Below, piece after piece: positions 1 to 16,095 of a stretch of 64,000 bases of DNA. The stretch's first letter is position 1, and each line of letters begins with the position of its first letter. The notes under the pieces are model-generated. The model saw only the letters and a program-made list of their open reading frames with translations, was not told the origin of the DNA and did no database searches. This DNA is from Eutreptiella sp. 'Long Island Sound 2002' (Eukaryota > Protista > Euglenida): positions 6,634,001 to 6,698,000 of the forward strand of contig OZ038379.1 in the NCBI GenBank assembly GCA_964036045.1, written 5' to 3'. Both the position numbers and the translations under genes were made by a program.

Positions 1-1800
1 GCCCAAATTTCCCATGCACAGTTTGGTGTCAAAGCACAAACCTCAATGTGATGACGCTCATGCACTGTACCTATTCTCAAGTGCCTGGCACCTTTTGGCC
101 CAAGTGGGTGGATGGCTAACACAAAATGTGCGGCATGTGTGTGATTGAGCATTCAAGCATTGTCTACATAGGCTTTGCAATGATGCATCTACACTCCATC
201 TACCACATACACACACGAGCAAGAGGATAAATAATGGCCAAATGAGTCACACAAGGTAGCAACAAGGCCACTGCCTTGTCCAATTGGCAAGTCAAACACA
301 CACAACACTCAAACAACACAATACCAACACAAAAAAAAGACAACACAAAACAAGAAAGCACAAAAGGTGGTAAGCATGCAACTTATTCTAGGACACCTAC
401 AAACCGCCACAAATACCCAAACTCAACAAACAACAGACCACACAAAGAAATTACGCCTGCATAAAAAAAGGGCCAGCAACTATTAACTCCAACAGCTGGC
501 GGGCAGGCTTGCGGCGGAATTGACCTAACGGCTGGCCACCACCAACAACACTATGTTGACATAGCCCAAAGAAAGACCGCCCATGTGGTTCAAGGTCATG
601 CCCATGTTATAGCAGCCCCGCCCCCCCCAAAAAAATTGGGCATCTATCCTACCACACATTGCAACTGTGGAGTCTTTTGCATTGCAAGCTGGACAGGTTT
701 TCATGAAAGTAACCAAAAAAAGAGCAAATTCGTGCTTCTGCTTTGGGGAGCAAGCTCTTTCCTCGCTGTGTCTTTTTCCCAATCAGGGTCTTTGGTGGCT
801 TCAACACAGAGCACGAGGGCATCTGGTGGCCAAACGCGACTCCTTGAGTGTTGAACGGAATATTGAGAACGACTTGGAACTGTACACAAATGTGCAGTGC
901 ACATAAAAAAAGAGCATCCTCCAAGCATCCGTCCGACGCAACGACACAAACAACGTGCGCGAAACAAGCTTCACCTGCAAGGAACGAGTGGAAGCACGTC
1001 CTCGTCAGGAATAGTCGACGTACGATGTGCGAAAGCCGTCGAAGAACTGCAGAGACGAATTCACGACCTTGTGGCGGCACTCTGAAGACAAAAACAACAT
1101 TGTGGACTTCTCTGGCACTTGGTAGAGCTGGTGTTTTGTGTGCATTGCTGGATTCGGACCCCTTGGAGCTACATACTGGATGCAAACAAAAAAAGGATGC
1201 ATTTGAACTGTGTTGAACTCTCCACTGTTTGAACACAAAGCAACACAAAAAAGGTAACGACACAAATTCGTGCTTCTGCTTTGGGGAGCAAGCTCTTTCC
1301 TCGCTGTGTCTTTTTCCCAATCAGGGTCTTTGGTGGCTTCAACACAGAGCACGAGGGCATCTGGTGGCCAAACGCGACTCCTTGAGTGTTGAACGGAATA
1401 TTGAGAACGACTTGGAACTGTACACAAATGTGCAGTGCACATAAAAAAAGAGCATCCTCCAAGCATCCGTCCGACGCAACGACACAAACAATGTGCGCGA
1501 AACAATCTTCACCTGCAAGGATTCGCGAGGCACGAATGGAAGCATGTCCTCGTCAGAAATAGTTGACGTATGACGTACGAAGCCGTCTCGTACGAAGCCG
1601 TCTAAGTGAGAGTTCGCGACCTCGTCGAGGCACTCTGAGCGATGAGAGCTAGCCACGTCTCGGACCTCTTGAACGTTGAAGGAATCCGTCTGGTGGCAAG
1701 CCACCACGTCGGTAGGCACGTCGGAGTGATCGTTGAAAACAGACAACCCGTACTTGGAAATGGTCCGGGCCAACACGTGTATCTCGTCACCAGCAATCAA
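1..1800 (-). pseudogene. Decayed KDZ (Kyakuja-Dileera-Zisupton)-like transposase remnant
   Basis: Broken minus-strand frames contain KTCPACNAKDSTVAMCGRIDA (CxxC...D), AYVDNA*ML and TVHERHHIEVC (YD-x-x-C-like and H-x3-H-x3-C-like motifs of KDZ transposases). Many stops and frameshifts; motif recall only. Confidence 0.35.
725..1575. repeat. Direct duplication of ~300 bp, period 538 bp (725-~1025 and 1263-~1575)
   Basis: CAAATTCGTGCTTCTGCTTTGGGGAGC...CACCTGCAAGG occurs twice, near-identical; the second copy has a short insertion. Confidence 0.9.
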
Positions 1801-1830
1801 ATACAGAATGGGAATCCCCCGAGCTCCCAG

Positions 1831-2013
1831 CTCCCCCGAGTCTCGCTTTGCCTGCTTCCCCAAGCGTAGCTCGGGGCATAAAAAGGTACGGCGGATCCCC
1901 CAAAATTCGCTTCGCCTGCACGGCTCCCCCAAGCGCAGCTCCGGCCATAAAAAGGTAAGGCAACTCCCCCGAGTCTCGCTTCGCCTGCAAGGCTCCCCCA
2001 AGCGCAGCTCTAG
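1831..2013. repeat. Tandem repeat, ~67-bp unit x ~3
   Basis: Recurring CTCCCCCGAGTCTCGCTT(T/C)GCCTGC...CCCCAAGCG(T/C)AGCTC and CATAAAAAGGTA motifs. Confidence 0.8.
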
Positions 2014-2327
2014 GCATCTCCACAAGTCCCATGTTCTGGTGGAGAGACCTTGAGCAAAAAGGTAAGGTGAAGGCACACCCAACAAAGAGCAAAGGTAAAG
2101 GTCAGAGGTAAAAGGTCAAAGTGCACACAACAAAGAGCAAAGGTCAAGTTCCAAGGTCAAAGGTCACAAGGGTGCAAGTCAGTTTGGAGATGATGCAGGT
2201 CACTGTGGAGAAGGTGTAACTGACAGCAAGCAGTAAAGGCAAAAGAAAGCACCTAGCAGCCTACAATGCGACGACCAAACATGCCAACTAATTTGCCTAA
2301 CTGCAATAATTATGTATTATGTATACA

Positions 2328-3644
2328 TGAACTAACAAGCGTAGCGTCATGACACAAGAACTTTTGCGGAGTAGCTGCGGAGTAGCGGCACGAGCAGACA
2401 ATTGGGTTTACGGTGGGTGCAAAAGTATTGAAATGCCCTCCCTTTAGCATTTACAGCATGAGGGCAAACACCTACGTACTATGCAATTGAACTTTATGAC
2501 ACTTGCTACTAACATCGGTGCTTGCACTCCATCATTTTGCGTTGATTCCAAAGCACAATATGCGGGTGAGACACATGCAGCCCATCCATATCCTCAAAGC
2601 TTCACGATGCGTGACACTCAGATGGTTTATGTTCATCCTTGCTTCAAGAGACAAATACAAAACCTTAAGGCTCCCAATTAGGAGGTGTGTTCAAATTCAC
2701 CCGGATAGTACATGGAAGGGTGAATTGTACAACACAATGCAAAGCAAGCGAGCAGCGCTCAAAAGCTCAAAGACATGGAACTCGATATAGACAGCAAAAT
2801 GCGGTGCCCCATGTGCTGCTGGTCTCAACACCAATAATCTGATGGGGGGCACGGTACAAAAGGGATTGAAAACAGGAAAATGGACGACCCTTGGACGTCT
2901 CAGTTTGAATGGCATCGCATCTATACCATAAACAATTTGTCATTTGGGGCACGCCAACTCTTCGGCAATCGCGAAGTCTCCCGAGGCAGAAGGAATACCT
3001 TCTCGAGCCTTCCGTAGGATGGGATCAAAATTTTACCCGCGCCCGCAAGGGTCGGCCAAAACCAAAACCAAACAAAACCAAAATTTGGTGCCACGCACAG
3101 GTTAGCAGCTGCTACAAGCGGAAAAGTAAGGATGCGGGCTTCAATGGGGGAGAGCTGATGAAAATGTTCTCAAATAAAATGCATCCGGGCTGCACCCGTG
3201 ACAAGTGGTAAAAGAGCCTTCTCCGTTCTCAAATTGTGCAATGCCAGTAAGGGAAACCACTTCAAGTGATAGCGACATCCACACGATGCAAGCCAATCCA
3301 CCCTCCACCATTGAGTGCAAAAAGTCCAAGATATCGCACTTTTGATGCCAATTCAAACGAAAGCGGATGGTTCGCCGCTGCTGTGCATAGCGCATGACGT
3401 CGTGCCTGCAAAATCGTTCAAAAACCCAGTTCAGCCGCAAACGGTGGTCACTAGCGAAAAAACATGAACACGACTCTCCAATACGGCCATGTGGTTGGTC
3501 GGCATGGCAAATCCCTGCTCTGGCACTCCCGGGAACCTAGTGACTTGGGAGGGAATGGGCCCAATTGTGGTTGTAGCTCACGTGTTCCCTTTGCAAGATT
3601 TTGTCCTTCATGCAAAACGGAAAATCTTTGAATCTTTGAATTGA
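2328..3644 (-). repeat. Left arm of a ~1.3-kb inverted duplication; contains the empty YR-element target site (CT core at 2668-2669, minus strand)
   Basis: Reverse complement matches 5691-6727 joined to 14587-14928. The ORF track shows identical peptides on opposite strands (e.g. 2909..3211+ and 6184..6486-). Confidence 0.93.
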
Positions 3645-5252
3645 GCCGCCAACCTAAGCTTGGTTGGGGTTTGGATACATGTGAAAAATCCCTAGATCAT
3701 CGAACAAAGGTTCTGTACTCCGTTTCCCATCCGGAGCCCCCGTTTGGCGCGAAGATTTCCCCGACAACTTTACCACAAGAGCACACACCCGAGGCATTCG
3801 TTTAGGGGAATTAGACGCAAGGTTTTGGTGGAAGCCCCGTTTTTGGTGCGGGAACATGCATCGAGTTTACTGAAGACGTGCCGCGAGGTACATGTTGCTT
3901 CACGGATGAACTTGCCGTGACCGGCAGTGCTGAGGATGGCCTGAAGGGAGACGGGGCACGCAGTTTGCGCTCTTGTTGCACCGTGAGAGCGTGTGCTGGT
4001 GAGGGTTGTACTTGTTGGGGTACATAGGCTCACCACCACTAGCGGAACACCACTCCGCTGTTGGACAGAGTGTTTGCACTTCGTGCTGAAAGGGGTATTG
4101 CCGTGTGGATCCCCAAGGGAATGTGCATATCCCAAGATGTTCCCTTCATAAAGTCCGTTCCGGACCCTGGCAACTCATTCCATTTGAAAAACTCCGTTCC
4201 AGCTAAACTCCATTCCATTCCATTTTGAAACTCCTATCCCAAGATCTCGAATATTCTTGTCGTACTGCAGAATTTGTGTTAAATAAGGAATAATAATGGC
4301 CTCGGCCACCGCGGGCTTTTTTCCTTATCCTTATGTTCTAATAATGTGTTTTGTAGAGCCAGGATGTTTTCCTAATTTTCTAATGGAGCCCAACCTCAGG
4401 GATGTATTTTGATGTGTTCCTCATTCTTTGCTTCGCCGCCTTCGGCGGTATTGTTCCTTGAATGAATGCACATAAGCATGCATGGGCACAAAGCAGGCAC
4501 AAAGCGTAAGAGGGAATTCTGAATGTGCTAAGCACGGCTAACCAAGGACGTGCAGCGAATCACGTCGCACATCTGCTCCCACCAAGTATGTCAGAGCCGA
4601 CTTGTGCCGAGGCTGAGCCTTTTGGGCAGTGATCGAGTAAGGCAAGCCCAAGGCACCAAAACCAGAGCGGCAATTTCATGAACGCAAATTCGGGGTGCGA
4701 AGCACAAAAAGTTTTTTCCCACCTAGTGCTGTAGTGTGTCTCCAAGCACTTGTTGTGGAATCCGTCCCCTGGAGTTGAGGCACCGGCACTTTAATGAGGA
4801 TAGTGATGAGGATGATGAGAATGACCCAGCTTGGGTTGATTTCATGGTAGAGATGGGGAGGAAGATGAGGAGGTTCAAGAGGAGGAGGACGATGACAATC
4901 AATTGCCGACCAATCTTGCTGATTGATAGCTTTAAAGCTACTACCACCCGCGGTGGACGAAGTACATGCATTCGACCCAAGTACTCATGAGTTTAGTGTC
5001 ACATGTGGACAACGCCGATGTTTTGGCTGCTGTCGGATCTGTGGCAGATTGAAACTCAGGTATCACACCTGGGTGATCGATCAATCACTCTACTGTATAT
5101 ACAGGTCAACACAGTCAGGCACCGTTTTGGTGCCTTCGCGGTCCCCACAGTAGCCACAGAAACGGTCAAGCGGGTAACCGGGCAGATCACGGAGTGTCAA
5201 ACCACCAGGTGCCAGTATGCAATTTGCAGCCTATAGGACGCACTAGAGGTTT

Positions 5253-5393
5253 CACAGCGCAGATAATTCCCCGTAAATTCGCGGTACGTCTCTGGACGAT
5301 GTCTGTGGTGGGGAGTTTTCGCACACAGCGCAGATAATTCCCTGTAAATTCGCGGTCGTCTCTGGACGATGTCTGTGGTGGGGAGCTTCTGAC
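5253..5393. repeat. Tandem repeat 2 x 71 bp
   Basis: CACAGCGCAGATAATTCCC(C/T)GTAAATTCGCGGT...GATGTCTGTGGTGGGGAG twice. Confidence 0.85.
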
Positions 5394-6727: not shown

Positions 6728-6796
6728 CGTGTTTTGTGCTTGCTCAAAACACGGGTTTAACTTAATTACCTCTTCATTAGGCATTTGTCAGTTTGT
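6726..6796 (+). repeat. Split direct repeat A1 (left terminus)
   Basis: CTCGTGTTTTG(T/A)GCTTGCTCAAAACAC...GGCATTTGTCAGTTTGT; 71 bp, near-identical to 14070-14140. Confidence 0.93.
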
Positions 6797-6808
6797 TCCC
6801 TTTTTGCC

Positions 6809-7337
6809 ATGTCTGGGCTTCACGGGAGCAGCGGGATGCAAGAGGACGCAATTTTTGTGTCCGACGATTCACACGCGGAATCGGGTACGGCCAAGGAATT
6901 GGCCGAGTTGAAGGCCATGCTCCGTCGACAGGATGCGGAGGTGGAGCGCTTGAGGGTACAATTAGCCGCCACGGAGATTGAAAAGCGCAAGGACACGGAA
7001 ATCCCGGACCTCAACTTGGATGGGATAGAGGAGTTTTTGAAGAAGGAAAGAGTCACGGTTTGGATGAAGGATGCATGTGCGGTATTAAAGAAGTATGTGA
7101 CGGCGGTTCCGAAGCCGAGTAGGCCAGCAGACGTGGGAGGTAAGCAAGGAGAACAATTAAGTCTCGGAGATGCGTTGGCGTACAGAATGTGGAAAGTCCT
7201 CATTGTTGCACATGCGACTTACGTGAAGAGGTATTCGCCGGGACAAGCATCGGGGCCCAAAGGAAAGTCGGAAAATTTTGATGAGGCCATGGCGAGTGGC
7301 GGGGATTCCTGGAGATATATAACTGCTAAGATCTGTT
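6809..7337 (+). CDS. gag-like ORF, 5' part (coiled-coil), interrupted by a nested insertion
   Basis: ATG 6809 follows TTTGTCAG plus a pyrimidine run; heptad-like ELAELKAMLRRQDAEVERLRVQLAA. The ORF's stop (7355-7357) lies inside the inserted inverted repeat. Confidence 0.65.
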
Positions 7338-7527
7338 CATGGGATGCAGCGTTCTAGGGCGTGGTGCGGAACCCCCCCAATTTTGGGTGTTGTTAATATG
7401 GTTGGAACCCGGAATTTCACATGTTACAAGGGTGCACTATGATGCAACAATGTGCCTTCCATGTATTGTTTGCTCGATATTGCCCGTTTTGCACTTTTTG
7501 CGATTTGATCTTTGTGTGCTCTAACTA

Positions 7528-7667
7528 GTTATCGCGGGGTTAGAACGGGGTTAGAGCACTAGTTATCGCGTGGGTTATCGCGCGATAACCTAGTTATCGC
7601 GGGGGTTATCGCGGGGGTTATCGCGCGATAACTAGTTATCGCGTGGGTTATCGCGTGGGTTATCGCG
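7528..7667. repeat. Array of GTTATCGCG motifs (9 forward, 2 reverse), mostly 12-bp spacing
   Basis: Counted directly; includes two perfect 16-bp palindromes GTTATCGCGCGATAAC (7574, 7617). Confidence 0.9.
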
Positions 7668-7670
7668 CTT

Positions 7671-7698
7671 CATTTTATCTTTCCCCTTTTCGCTTTAG
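7671..7698 (+). promoter_or_regulatory. Putative (trans-)splice acceptor for the dioxygenase ORF
   Basis: Polypyrimidine tract CATTTTATCTTTCCCCTTTTCGCTTTAG ending 28 nt upstream of ATG 7726. Confidence 0.45.
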
Positions 7699-7725
7699 CT
7701 CTCAAAGCCTTCGTATTCTTTGATA

Positions 7726-10236
7726 ATGGCCCTTGCTGCTGCCCACGCTTGGTGCGAGCACCATCAAAAGCTCCTTGGGGTCCGTCGCCTTGGCGGTCCT
7801 GAGGGGTTTACGATGGGTGATGCCAATGTGAGGCGCCCTGTGGCGACCCGCTTTGAACATGGTGTGGACTTTGGACTCCTTGTCCATAAGTCCCCCTTCA
7901 TGGCGGACGACCGAGACCCCCTGGTTCTCAGCAACTACATCTTCGAGTTGCTAGAGGTAAATCCAGGGGTTGCTGGATTTTTGATCCAGCTTCATCCGGA
8001 CGATGTGGACGCGGTGGTGGAGTCCGTCACCGCCCATGCCGAGAAGGGTGCGGGGACGAAGACGACCCTCTATGTGGGTCAGGAGGAGGAGGAAGTGGAG
8101 GAAGTGGAGGAGGAGGAGGAGGATGCGGGGGGGGTGGGGGCTGGGGGGAGGAAGGAGAAGCCCCACAACCCCCTCATGATTAGTGTCCAGAAGGTAAGGA
8201 TCCGACCGGGTAAGGGGAAGGGGCAGTCGGATGGTTGGTTCCCCCAACCCCTCACCCACAACACCCGCCGGGTCTGCACTGACGACCCCGAAAACAAGCT
8301 CCCCATGCACTCCCTTTGCCCCACAAGGGAGTGGGAGCGTGAGTGGTATGGGGTCACCACTCCCAACATTGTTTCGGGGCAGGGGGTGATTCTTTTTCCA
8401 TTTGGGGCAACACCCCCCCTTATTGGGGAGGCGGAGGAGGTGGTTGCCGCCGAGCCCTTGGGGGCCTTTAATAGGGACCCCAATGACCTTGTGCTCACGG
8501 TGGGGGGGAAGCTGGTGGTCAACCACCTCCTGGAGCACGATTTTTTGAGTGCTGTGCAGCTCCAAAGTCTTTTGGATGATTTGGATAGGGTGCCTCTCTC
8601 AGAGAAGGCACCCATTTTCAATGAGAACCCCCCCATTGTCGGCAGGCCCCAAGATTCTGGGACCCGCCGTACATTGTACGGCAACTATGGGGGTGCCCAC
8701 CACCACAGGCACAACCCCCACAAGCTCCATGATCTGCCAGTCCTCAAAAGGGTGGCAGATCGTGTGCTTGAGACGGCGAAGAAGACTGTGGTGGGGGGGG
8801 TTGGATGGAGCTGCACCATCCTTGACATGGCCGAAATTTCGAGCTATGACCACACCCCCCAGCACCTCCATCGCGACGCCCCCCCCTACACCATTCCTGA
8901 AGGCACATTGATTGTCAATTGCCTTATTATGCTAACCCATAATCATGAGGAGGAGGATGGGTCACATTTTCTTTTTGTGCCCTCCAGCAGTTCGGGGTTC
9001 CCTGACCCTTGGGTGGAGAGGGCTGTGCCATTCAAGAGGGGCACTGCCTTTTTTTTTAATGCCCTTGATGTCCACAGGGGGTCGGGGATTCCCAAGGCCT
9101 CCCCCACGGGGGTGTCCCACCCCCGCCTCATGGCATTTTTTGCCATTGAGCTTACCGTGGGGGGGAATCTTCGATTCCCCAACCTGCACGTGACCCAGTC
9201 CATTAAGAGGCCCCAGCTGGGGGCACCTGGTGGCCGGGTGGCCAGGACAGTCCAGTGTGATGGGGCGGTTAGGTGTAGGGGGAAGGTGGTAGCCAATTGC
9301 TACGGATGCAATCGGCTGATTTTGTGCACCGCCCACAAAGATGGCCTTTGTGTGCCATGCCAGGAGGGGGAGGAGGTGGAGGGGGGGGAGGAGGAGGAGG
9401 TGGTGGTGGACCCCAATGGGGTCAGCATTGAGCAATCTGCTCAGTGCTTGCTCCCGGTGGGAACAACCACCGGGCATTTTTTGTTGTCGGGGTGGGGGGT
9501 TGGGAGGGAGGTGATTGCCCCCCTCACTAATGAGGAGGCGGGGGCGGTCGCAGGCCACCCCGATCAGTGCCCCTTGGCCAAGGTGTGCCATGGGGAGGCA
9601 CTGCCCTGGCCCACCCTGCAAGGGCATGTTGGGATGAAGGTGCCGGCGGGCACCATTTTGGTGGTGAGGAGGGGGTTGTATGGGGGAGTGGCAAGGGTGG
9701 CCCCTGAGGCGGAGGGGGTGGCCCAGGTGGTGGAGTGGCGGCAGGTGGGGGAGTATGCGGCCGTCACGGACTTCGTGTGGCTGCGGAGGCTGGGCCTGGT
9801 GCTGGACGACGCCAAGAAGGAGGGCCAAGGCATGTGGGTAGGTGGGTGTTCCAGAAATTGCGTTCTAACTAGGGGTTCCGCACCACGCCCTAGAACACTG
9901 CATCCTACACATAGACGCGTACGTGTTGAAATCTCAACACGTACGCGTTGGTTTTTTCTTTGTTGGAAATTTGTCATTTTTCATGCAAAATTCATGTGTG
10001 GGGTATCACCTTACCCAACCCAACCCCTCTTTGCCCTTTCCCTACACCACTGGGTGCCACTGCAAACATTGCCGACCGTAGGTCGCCTTCTCCCTCTGCA
10101 GAGTGTCCCGAAAACCATACTGAATTTCCCAAAACAAGAGTATTCAATTCAAGAAACGGGACGGGGTAGCCTACTGGTTATCCAAGGCCGGAGACTGGAT
10201 ACCGGTGGACGCACAACCCAGCGAAGATTGCCGTAG
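7726..10236 (+). CDS. 2OG-Fe(II) dioxygenase (DSBH, PhyH-like motif spacing) fused to a Cys/His Zn finger; genuine coding probably ends ~9850 and then reads through the cassette end
   Basis: HLHRD (HxD, 8869-8877), FFFNALDVHRG (distal His 9073), PRLMAFF (2OG-binding Arg 9124). C-x5-C-x7-CxxC-x5-CxxH-x4-CxxC at 9256-9360. Acidic poly-E linkers; intronless. Confidence 0.75.
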   Translation: MALAAAHAWCEHHQKLLGVRRLGGPEGFTMGDANVRRPVATRFEHGVDFGLLVHKSPFMADDRDPLVLSNYIFELLEVNPGVAGFLIQLHPDDVDAVVESVTAHAEKGAGTKTTLYVGQEEEEVEEVEEEEEDAGGVGAGGRKEKPHNPLMISVQKVRIRPGKGKGQSDGWFPQPLTHNTRRVCTDDPENKLPMHSLCPTREWEREWYGVTTPNIVSGQGVILFPFGATPPLIGEAEEVVAAEPLGAFNRDPNDLVLTVGGKLVVNHLLEHDFLSAVQLQSLLDDLDRVPLSEKAPIFNENPPIVGRPQDSGTRRTLYGNYGGAHHHRHNPHKLHDLPVLKRVADRVLETAKKTVVGGVGWSCTILDMAEISSYDHTPQHLHRDAPPYTIPEGTLIVNCLIMLTHNHEEEDGSHFLFVPSSSSGFPDPWVERAVPFKRGTAFFFNALDVHRGSGIPKASPTGVSHPRLMAFFAIELTVGGNLRFPNLHVTQSIKRPQLGAPGGRVARTVQCDGAVRCRGKVVANCYGCNRLILCTAHKDGLCVPCQEGEEVEGGEEEEVVVDPNGVSIEQSAQCLLPVGTTTGHFLLSGWGVGREVIAPLTNEEAGAVAGHPDQCPLAKVCHGEALPWPTLQGHVGMKVPAGTILVVRRGLYGGVARVAPEAEGVAQVVEWRQVGEYAAVTDFVWLRRLGLVLDDAKKEGQGMWVGGCSRNCVLTRGSAPRPRTLHPTHRRVRVEISTRTRWFFLCWKFVIFHAKFMCGVSPYPTQPLFALSLHHWVPLQTLPTVGRLLPLQSVPKTILNFPKQEYSIQETGRGSLLVIQGRRLDTGGRTTQRRLP
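9915..9948. other. Perfect hairpin, 15-bp stem, 4-nt loop
   Basis: ACGCGTACGTGTTGA-AATC-TCAACACGTACGCGT, 9 nt after the right inverted repeat and followed by a T-run. Confidence 0.95.
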
Positions 10237-14588: not shown

Positions 14589-14928
14589 TAAGGTTTTGTA
14601 TTTGTCTCTTGAAGCAAGGATGAACATAAACCATCCGAGTGTCACGCATCATGAAGCTTTGAGGACATGGATGGGCTGCATGTGTCTCACCCGCATATTG
14701 TGCTTTGGAATCAACGCAAAATGATGGAGTGCAAGCACCGATGTTAGTAGCAAGTGTCATAAAGTTCAATTGCATAGTACGTAGGTGTTTGCCCTCATGC
14801 TGTAAATGCTAAAGGGAGGGCATTTCAATACTTTTGCACCCACCGTAAACCCAATTGTCTGCTCGTGCCGCTACTCCGCAGCTACTCCGCAAAAGTTCTT
14901 GTGTCATGACGCTACGCTTGTTAGTTCA
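14587..14928 (+). repeat. Right arm (part 2) of the inverted duplication
   Basis: Reverse complement of 2328-2669 with few substitutions. Confidence 0.92.
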
Positions 14929-15108
14929 CAAAATCATTGTTTTCCATTATTTAAATTATGTATTATGTATGTTCATGTATTACATATTATTCATTTCGTT
15001 TATTTACATGTAAAACGTGCAAGTAACCCGTTTTACCGGCACGAAAACGGGCTATTAACCCGTTTTTCTCGGCCATGTAACCCGTTTTACTGCCGAAAAA
15101 ATAGGTGC

Positions 15109-15681
15109 TGTTTCTATTTTGTTTTTGGTTGCAAAGGCAATGCCATAGACTCCGGGTACCATGGACGCATCCCTACAACCCTTGGACTCGAGTCCGGAGA
15201 CTCCACCCCAATAGGCTATGGTCCGACAGTCCAATCCCCCATCGTCCTCAGCATATGTATGCCTTGCAACAGAAGACATATTAAGGATGACTCTATGTAT
15301 CTGGCATATTCATCACCAAGACCATGTCTTATGTGACTGCACTACATTTGGTACCGAATTCAAGTAGGTTTGAAATAAATACGGTCCCTACTTACTGTGG
15401 CATGGACAAGGGCGTGGCTATGACAAAGGCGAGGGGTACCTTGTTTGACACAGCCACCTACCATGAGCTACTGCATCACTACTACGGAAACCTACTATGG
15501 AAAGGCACACAAACGGTGTTGTTTCTATTTTGTTCCTAGTTGCAAAGGCAATGCCTCAGACTCCGGGTACCATGGACGCATCCCTACAACCCTTGGACTC
15601 GAGTCCGGAGACTCCACCCCAATAGGCTATGGTTCGACAGTCCAATCCCCCATCGTCCTCAGCATATGTTTGCCTTGCAAC
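15109..15681. repeat. Direct repeat of ~160 bp (15109-15270 and 15520-15681)
   Basis: TGTTTCTATTTTGTT...GACTCCGGGTACCATGGACGCATCCC...GCCTTGCAAC twice. Confidence 0.88.
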
Positions 15682-16095
15682 GCCAAGCGCAGGGAGCAAA
15701 AATTCAGAAGTGGTCCCCAACAAAGGGGAGCAAAATCAGAAGTGGCTACCTCACCCCTGCCTTCTCGGGGGCCAAAAAGGGGGCGGAAATGCTATGGTGC
15801 CCCTGCATTCTCGGGGATCCCCAACGCCAAGCGCGGGGAGCAAAAATTCAGAAGTGGTCACCAACAAAGGGGAACAAAATCAGAAGTGGCTACCTCACCC
15901 CTGCCTTCTCGGGGGCCCAAAAGAGGGCGGGTATGCTTTGTCACCCCATTCTCGGGGATCCCCAACACCAAGCGCGGGGAGCAAAAATTCAGAAGTGGTC
16001 CCCAATAAAGTAGAACTAAATCAGAAGTGGCTACCTCACCCCTGCCTTCATGGGGGCCCAAAAGAGGGTGACGTATTCTTTGTGGCGTTTTGGCG
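15681..16095. repeat. Tandem repeat, ~143 bp x 3
   Basis: CCAAGCGC(A/G)GGGAGCAAAAATTCAGAAGTGGTC...AAATCAGAAGTGGCTACCTCACCCCTGCCTTC units. Confidence 0.88.

Follow-up and report, generated by a model that had tools for sequence, protein, structure and literature searches.

A non-autonomous copy of a probable RAG1-like cut-and-paste transposon with a predicted PhyH-like oxygenase gene in Eutreptiella sp.

The CMCT clade of transposons comprises EnSpm/CACTA, Mirage, Chapaev, Transib, Plavaka, ESTA, Lanisha and RAG1, and its marks are C(2)C and H(3-4)H motifs, terminal inverted repeats (TIRs) and target duplications of 2-5 bp (Kojima 2025, PMC12730594). The termini are 5'-CA..TG-3' "in most cases"; given that PlavakaA, with 2-bp duplications and TGT..ACA ends, lies within the clade, such termini are not strictly defining (PMC12730594). 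ESTA is RAG1-like by HHpred, duplicates TA and carries TET, and transposon-borne TET/JBP enzymes have been proposed to counter silencing (PMC12730594). RAG1-like cut-and-paste transposons attract interest because they are related to the machinery by which antibody genes are built, and those that carry TET/JBP are the best case of a transposon-encoded epigenetic counter-measure. We analysed a 64,000-nucleotide stretch of the genome of the euglenid Eutreptiella sp. 'Long Island Sound 2002' (contig OZ038379.1, positions 6,634,001 to 6,698,000), referred to here as the window. Window positions 7340-9907 are very probably a copy, internally deleted and non-autonomous, of a cut-and-paste DNA transposon that is present in high copy number and has been active recently; this accounts best for the locus overall. 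In its full form, this family encodes a RAG1-like transposase together with a probable Fe(II)/2-oxoglutarate (2OG) oxygenase. A preliminary description of the locus had suggested a possible undescribed family of oxidative modifiers of nucleic acids or chromatin, carried by transposons to manipulate silencing. The element is a new lineage or variant inside the CMCT clade, which has already been described (PMC12730594), and not a new kind of element.

The limits of the insertion were fixed by copies of the host sequence with and without it. A 440-bp query from the left flank yielded 12 host copies, all 100% identical, nine of which are empty and three filled, with the window among the latter. 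The empty sites read GATCTGTTCA joined directly to CATAGACGCGTACG, with a single CA; at the junction itself, all nine show GTTCA followed by CATAGACGCG. Because these nine paralogous sites carry one CA only, the inserted unit is 7340-9909. The element proper, 7340-9907, is flanked by target-site duplications of CA at 7338-7339 and 9908-9909. The identical host copies thus amount to a clean natural experiment that fixes the ends and the 2-bp duplication exactly. The preliminary description had recognized a discrete mobile insertion, as these sites bear out, and had placed its limits at 7338 and 9951, which they do not. It had also stated that removal of the insert rejoins the host gag reading frame. 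The frame is indeed open as far as 10236, but the peptide given for the junction (AKIC followed by FFSLL) was wrong, the real one being AKICS followed by HRRVRVEIS.

The same ends recur throughout the genome. In 30 fetched genomic loci, the shared sequence starts at TGGGATGCAG (window position 7340) and is approximately 100% identical, with unrelated 5' flanks, and complete copies terminate in the reverse complement (ending CTGCATCCCA), so that the TIRs are 36 bp long. The 34-nucleotide inverted-repeat arms noted earlier (7342-7375 and 9872-9905, 97% complementary) are real; they extend to the 36-bp TIRs and are terminal, not subterminal as had been thought. The 5' TIR occupies 7340-7375 on the forward strand and pairs with the 3' TIR at 9872-9907, which has two changes from the canonical sequence and ends in GCATCCTA instead of GCATCCCA. 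Flanking dinucleotides were compared for nine elements with both ends, including one copy nested inside another, and agreed in all nine: CA (the window), AC, TA, TT, CA, CT, TA, TA and CC. The target duplication is therefore 2 bp of variable sequence, rather than the TT site first proposed, and the family termini are 5'-TG..CA-3', with the start TGGGATG.

A search of the window's own 2.28-Gb genome with positions 7338-9951 returned 2587 first-look candidates, and all 40 long (near-full-length) matches were approximately 100% identical. Protein queries gave 10,512 first-look candidates for sequences like the first open reading frame (ORF) of the element, ORF-A, and 6,505 for sequences like its transposase, ORF-B. 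The family consists of thousands of near-identical, apparently very young copies. Complete copies with the same TIRs were found at 839, 2568, 3020, 3729, 6368 and approximately 14,600 bp; the 3020-bp copy holds ORF-A only, and the 14.6-kb copy contains a nested insert. The shortest of these (L035:5101-5939) resembles a miniature inverted-repeat transposable element and is flanked by a CT/CT duplication. With this 839-bp derivative as query, 3349 first-look candidates were obtained, with many half-matches at 95-98% identity; short forms are therefore numerous and somewhat older. Alignment of the longer copies revealed a modular element whose variants are distinguished by internal deletions. The full form, of approximately 7.1 kb, consists of a TIR, a repeat array, ORF-A (709 amino acids), an array, ORF-C, an array, ORF-B (552 amino acids), an inverted array and a TIR. 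The dioxygenase-like gene had previously been taken as stand-alone cargo, but it is the first of three genes in a DDE transposon, the transposase of which has been lost from the window copy. The youth of the copies, their simple ends and this natural deletion series (0.8 to 7 kb) make the family a practical system for transposition assays.

The deletion in the window copy was located by comparison with other copies. Among the 40 long matches, the last 115 bases of the query (positions 2500-2614) are common only to the three filled host copies, whereas the remaining 37 pass the equivalent of window position 9836 into the end of ORF-A (QGMCPCHQV, stop) and then into the second array. Most copies read GGCATGTG followed by TCCATGTCACC at this point; in the window, a junction at 9836/9837 with one G of microhomology leads directly to the last ~70 bp of the element. 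The missing part measures approximately 3.8 kb relative to the 6368-bp copy, L033, from which the window copy otherwise differs at 4 of 2497 bases, and approximately 4.5 kb when the full form is taken as reference. Both TIRs and the 5' array are kept; ORF-C, ORF-B, three of the four arrays and the last part of ORF-A have been removed. Lacking ORF-B, ORF-C and three arrays, the window copy is thus unable to move alone. The deletion also took the stop codon of ORF-A, and the phase of the insertion happens to match, so that a chimeric frame of 837 amino acids runs through the 3' TIR into the host ORF (open frame 7720-10236, ATG at 7726).

To characterize the transposase, we searched for relatives of ORF-B and modelled its structure. 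An exhaustive HMMER search yielded 539 relatives, including full-length proteins at 30-38% identity on short metagenomic contigs. Neither ORF-B nor 25 of its relatives matched any Pfam family at E-values up to 1, and a sequence search of the PDB with ORF-B gave nothing significant and no RAG1. An AlphaFold2 model built from the alignment of HMMER relatives had a mean predicted local distance difference test score (pLDDT) of 85.5 and a predicted template modelling (TM) score of 0.80. When this model was compared with the PDB by Foldseek, the top 49 matches were all RAG1 core, amphioxus RAG-like (BbRAGL) or Helicoverpa Transib (HzTransib) structures, with E-values of ~1e-10. ORF-B contains D177 (in SVDATS), D260 (GDGKG), C274-x2-C277 (C-W-L-C), H470-x4-H475 and E495 (IPTE), the last of these 20 residues past H475, and C274, C277 and H475 are nearly invariant in 26 relatives. 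As judged from the predicted structure, ORF-B is a DDE transposase with the RAG1/Transib core fold.

Its fold, its motifs and the target duplications, rather than a tree, place the element in the CMCT clade but not in Transib proper. It shares with the clade an RNase H-like DDE core, C(2)C and H(4)H motifs, and 36-bp TIRs with 2-bp duplications. With Transib and RAG1/ProtoRAG it shares the DDE triad and the Cys2 and His2 zinc site at equivalent positions. Transib and RAG-like elements, however, generate 5-bp target duplications and have CAC(A/T)GTG heptamer-like termini, whereas the present element has 2-bp duplications, TGGGATG termini, no sequence-level match to RAG1 or Transib and no Pfam RAG1 family. 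Nor does it have a RAG2-like kelch/PHD partner, the oxygenase-zinc-finger gene and a coiled-coil gene being found instead. A fold search of the Atlas also scored Plavaka- and CACTA-type clusters at least as high (TM 0.61-0.65): the values were 0.65 for a Plavaka cluster (PF18759), 0.61 for CACTA Transposase_21 (PF02992) and 0.60 for DUF1280, and TM scores to these three kinds of cluster ranged from 0.60 to 0.67. CACTA/En-Spm elements are likewise multi-gene TIR elements with a transposase of a related clade, inverted subterminal arrays at both ends and many internal-deletion derivatives mobilized in trans. They differ from the present element in having a 3-bp duplication and CACTA termini; here, arrays also lie between the genes, and the accessory gene is oxygenase-like and not TnpA-like.

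In the window, ORF-A extends over 7726-9834 on the forward strand and comprises codons 1-703 of the canonical 709, with the substitutions N325H and V558E relative to L033; the native last six codons and the stop are missing owing to the junction at 9836/9837. The HxD...H...R motifs and the eight-ligand finger attributed to this long coding stretch in the preliminary description are all present in these 703 codons. A PhyH-like 2OG/Fe(II) oxygenase region is predicted at 8542-9081 (amino acids 273-452), in which the motifs HRD (amino acids 382-384) and HRG (450-452) supply the putative iron ligands H382 (8869-8871), D384 (8875-8877) and H450 (9073-9075), with R467 (9124-9126) just 3' of the region. 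These are followed by a Cys/His zinc finger at 9256-9360 of the form C-x5-C-x7-C-x2-C-x5-C-x2-H-x4-C-x2-C (C511, C517, C525, C528, C534, H537, C542 and C545), for which the single family match in Pfam is a weak one to IBR (E 0.1).

The assignment of the oxygenase region is carried by a distant homolog. On metagenomic contig L050, a transposase homolog 36% identical to ORF-B is directly followed by an ORF-A homolog that is 26% identical to ORF-A over 412 residues (E 2e-26). This homolog scores above the cut-off of 22 bits that Pfam sets for PhyH (27.9 bits, E 3.4e-6), and the match covers positions 2-204 of the 213 in the profile. H382-R-D384, H450-R-G, R467 and all eight zinc ligands are conserved between the window ORF-A and the L050 protein, and H382-R-D384, H450 and R467 are invariant among homologs of 26-31% identity. 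Language-model look-alikes of ORF-A in the Atlas were weak and all of PhyH type, and a PDB search with a profile of ORF-A and its L050 homolog placed the PhyH-type oxygenases TlxJ (7vbq) and 4nao on top, with HRD and HRGS aligned but at E-values that are not significant. No Tet_JBP match was found in Pfam for ORF-A, its L050 homolog or the 202-amino-acid piece of ORF-C (E up to 1), or for the 413-amino-acid piece of ORF-C (E up to 10). The earlier preference for a PhyH-like over a TET/JBP-like candidate is in agreement with these results, and we infer that ORF-A combines an Fe(II)/2OG oxygenase of the PhyH type with a zinc finger in one protein.

ORF-A and ORF-B also occur together elsewhere. 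At 27 scored places in the genome, an ORF-A-like frame is followed on its own strand, 0.7-7 kb further downstream, by an ORF-B-like frame, and at some of these places differing frame lengths and match ranges suggest more than one family. Word-based protein searches with ORF-A (amino acids 230-520), with the profile of ORF-A and its L050 homolog, and with ORF-B returned only near-identical ENA proteins, most likely derived from a second assembly of this organism. Relatives of ORF-A were also sought in two metagenome scans, with no confirmed match. The motifs and this pairing are consistent with ORF-A being a long-standing, stable accessory gene of one sub-lineage rather than recent passive cargo. 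On L050 (region 600-2760), the transposase homolog is fenced by inverted repeat clusters (approximately 617-712 and 2584-2762), which recall the gene-flanking arrays of the present family.

The arrays are a regular feature of the element. In the window, the 5' subterminal array occupies 7522-7668 on the forward strand and consists of GTTATCGCG and CGCGATAAC units with CTAAC-TAG spacers (period 12/42 by Tandem Repeats Finder); the tandem repeats detected there span 7562-7668. GTTATCGCG occurs exactly 11 times in the window, always within 7528-7667, against 0.21 occurrences expected by chance, so that the internal tandem repeats of the earlier account are genuine. In full-length copies, such a module precedes each of the three genes and is inverted before the 3' TIR; those of L033 lie at 1223-1329, 3547-3720, 5103-5264 and 7071-7180. 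The window array is followed by a pyrimidine-rich tract, 7669-7698 on the forward strand, which ends in AG 27 nucleotides 5' of the ATG and which, as read from the sequence, may be a trans-splice acceptor or a 5' untranslated region. T-rich tracts ending in AG likewise follow the arrays before ORF-C and ORF-B. The arrays could be protein-binding sites, promoter or acceptor modules, or both. Two estuary metatranscriptome libraries contained contigs with 0 mismatches to ORF-A (up to 761 bases) and ORF-B (up to 508 bases), and one RNA-library contig runs unbroken past the equivalent of the AG at 7698.

Several results weigh against this account of the element and of ORF-A. The termini are TG...CA, unlike the CA...TG of most CMCT elements. 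The window ORF-A itself falls below the Pfam cut-off for PhyH (PF05721; E 0.011, 16.5 bits against 22) and is also sub-threshold for 2OG-FeII_Oxy_3 (E 0.075). Its profile matches in the PDB had E-values of 0.2-0.3, and no significant PDB sequence match was found for ORF-A. An AlphaFold2 model of the full protein, based on a shallow alignment of 15 paralogs from the same genome, had a pLDDT of only 25.5, too low for use, and the double-stranded β-helix fold of ORF-A is thus putative. Two distant ORF-B lineages, L056 and L057, have no ORF-A or ORF-C homolog within approximately 8 kb upstream, and none was found in 8 kb downstream for L056 or in the ~0.5 kb that remains to the contig end downstream for L057; the pairing of ORF-A with ORF-B is therefore not universal. 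Transcription is indicated only weakly by the estuary contigs, given that RNA libraries could contain DNA, and no spliced leader was seen in these contigs.

Elements with a comparable gene content are the fungal transposons that carry TET/JBP genes (ESTA, Plavaka and EnSpm; PMC12730594), with which the present family shares cut-and-paste movement at TIRs, short target duplications and a second gene for a 2OG/Fe(II) dioxygenase, a putative one in the present case. PlavakaA is close in its ends, with 2-bp duplications and TGT..ACA against 2 bp and TGG..CCA here. In the present family, however, the oxygenase is PhyH-like without a Tet_JBP match, the host is a protist and not a fungus, the duplication is not restricted to TA, a palindromic repeat array precedes every gene, and a third gene is present, ORF-C, whose in-frame stop is conserved. 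KDZ (Kyakuja-Dileera-Zisupton) elements are also DNA transposons that travel with a 2OG/Fe(II) dioxygenase, but both the transposase group (CMCT here) and the dioxygenase family differ. The analogy with transposon-borne TET/JBP genes drawn in the preliminary description is thus apt, although for KDZ it holds only at the level of theme. A protist transposon with a RAG1-fold transposase, present in thousands of young copies, appears to carry stably a predicted 2OG oxygenase of a different kind, fused to a zinc finger.

We envisage that ORF-B would cut at the 36-bp TIRs and integrate with a 2-bp stagger, and that the internal deletion in the window copy would have arisen by abortive gap repair after excision. 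This copy was inserted at a CA within the first ORF of the host retroelement and was then copied with that host by a large segmental duplication. Its mobilization would depend entirely on provision of ORF-B in trans and might be inefficient, the 3' array having been lost. By analogy with the systems above, ORF-A would most likely have as its target the transposition complex, or else the DNA or chromatin at the element, and so aid expression or mobility, and its zinc finger and COOH-terminal part may target the CG-rich arrays. The more specific proposal, that ORF-A is an active PhyH-type Fe(II)/2OG oxygenase that modifies DNA bases, chromatin or the transposition complex at these arrays and is needed for mobility or for escape from silencing, is one that we advance tentatively, as possible but short of probable. 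If it is true, the family would be a non-TET counterpart of the fungal TET-carrying transposons, and transposons that bring along an oxidative modifier would be a theme confined neither to fungi nor to TET/JBP. ORF-A would then stand to the RAG1-fold transposase of a protist as RAG2 does to RAG1, as its functional partner.

ORF-A might instead have no catalytic role and serve the transposase as a structural or DNA-binding partner, in the manner of TnpA in CACTA elements or of RAG2 for RAG1, with the finger and the COOH-terminal part recognizing the GTTATCGCG arrays and the oxygenase-like domain serving as a scaffold. The arrays flank every gene and are subterminal and inverted, as are the repeats to which TnpA binds in CACTA elements; conservation extends to all eight zinc ligands; and elements of the CMCT type often need a second protein. 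A mere scaffold would not, however, be expected to keep the HxD...H triad and the downstream arginine invariant across very distant homologs, and no DNA-binding domain family was detected by Pfam in ORF-A or its L050 homolog. We consider this role unlikely as a substitute for an enzymatic one; it is compatible with catalysis, and both could hold.

Somewhat less likely still is that ORF-A is passive cargo, a host gene captured by one transposon lineage that has no role in the life cycle and is conserved only through the youth of the copies. The copies in the genome are approximately 100% identical and hence hold little information on selection, L056 and L057 lack ORF-A nearby, and TET/JBP genes are reported to be often passively transferred between transposon lineages (PMC12730594). 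What speaks against passive carriage is the independent contig L050, on which a 26%-identical ORF-A homolog with an intact frame, metal-binding motifs and zinc ligands stands beside a 36%-identical transposase homolog; so deep a pairing implies long co-inheritance under purifying selection. The collinearity of ORF-A-like and ORF-B-like frames at the 27 scored places, not all of which agree in frame length and match range, points the same way, and a search of 5.8 billion proteins revealed no relative of comparable length outside transposons. The architecture originally proposed, a Helentron/DINE-1-like cassette that is non-autonomous and combines subterminal inverted repeats and internal tandem repeats with a 3' stem-loop, T-rich sites and a captured dioxygenase gene, is highly improbable. 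Inverted repeats, tandem repeats within the element and a perfect hairpin close by do exist. The hairpin and T-run, however, are present in the nine empty sites, and thus belong to the host, and follow no other element copy examined; the repeats are terminal with 2-bp duplications of variable sequence, and full-length copies encode a RAG1-fold DDE transposase and not a Rep/helicase. Overall, the observations of the preliminary description are partly confirmed and its interpretation is partly supported.

The third gene of the full form, ORF-C (L036:279-2132), consists of a frame of 413 amino acids with a coiled-coil-like tail, an in-frame TGA (TAA in one copy) and a frame of 202 amino acids. 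The stop is present in all 16 uninterrupted copies, which suggests either read-through or two products. The 413-amino-acid piece has no Pfam match at E-values up to 10. The 202-amino-acid tail (L036:1524-2132) shows an H..D...H...R-x-S-like pattern reminiscent of a further 2OG oxygenase, but neither Pfam nor the PDB gave a match to this tail, and it is not similar to ORF-A.

The host of the insertion is plausibly a tyrosine-recombinase retroelement, because neighbouring ORFs match Phage_integrase (weakly), RVT_1 (E 1.4e-12) and the RNase H-type RVT_3 in Pfam. The upstream part of its first ORF lies at 6785-7339 on the forward strand and is in frame with 9910-10236 in the empty copies. The nesting of the insert in the first ORF of such an element had been correctly recognized, since the host encodes a tyrosine-recombinase-like ORF, a reverse transcriptase and RNase H. 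The hairpin, with a perfect 15-bp stem and a 4-nucleotide loop, lies at 9915-9948, within the host ORF and outside the element, and is present in all empty sites. Together with the T-run, it had been counted as part of the mobile cassette. At no locus examined did the hairpin and T-run travel with the element. The hairpin is located 5 bp from the insertion point; a RAG1-fold transposase might conceivably prefer such structures as targets, a thought raised by this single case. A scan of the window against Rfam gave no match.

Sequence outside the host element (window positions 1400-2600 and 14800-16000) is 100% identical beside ~25 copies, filled and empty alike. Most of these copies are on the same chromosome-scale contig, at 4.9-12.3 Mb, and those in the block adjoining the window are approximately 158 kb apart. 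The window lies within a large, very young segmental repeat. Spread of the insert by retrotransposition together with its host was considered and rejected, given that the flanks outside the host element are identical too; for the same reason, the three filled host copies represent segmental duplication. The insertion occurred once, in one repeat unit, and was then copied twice by segmental duplication or was duplicated in the assembly.

A copy inserted at TA inside another copy was found on another contig (L005/L036; C4:163.207-163.219 Mb). The nested copy sits 337 bp from the 5' end of the outer element, and matching 2-bp duplications flank each of the two elements separately. On other contigs, dispersed host copies at 96-99% identity can be aligned only as far as window position 7317 and diverge from there, 22 bp before the insertion site; host sub-families thus differ in this part of the first ORF.

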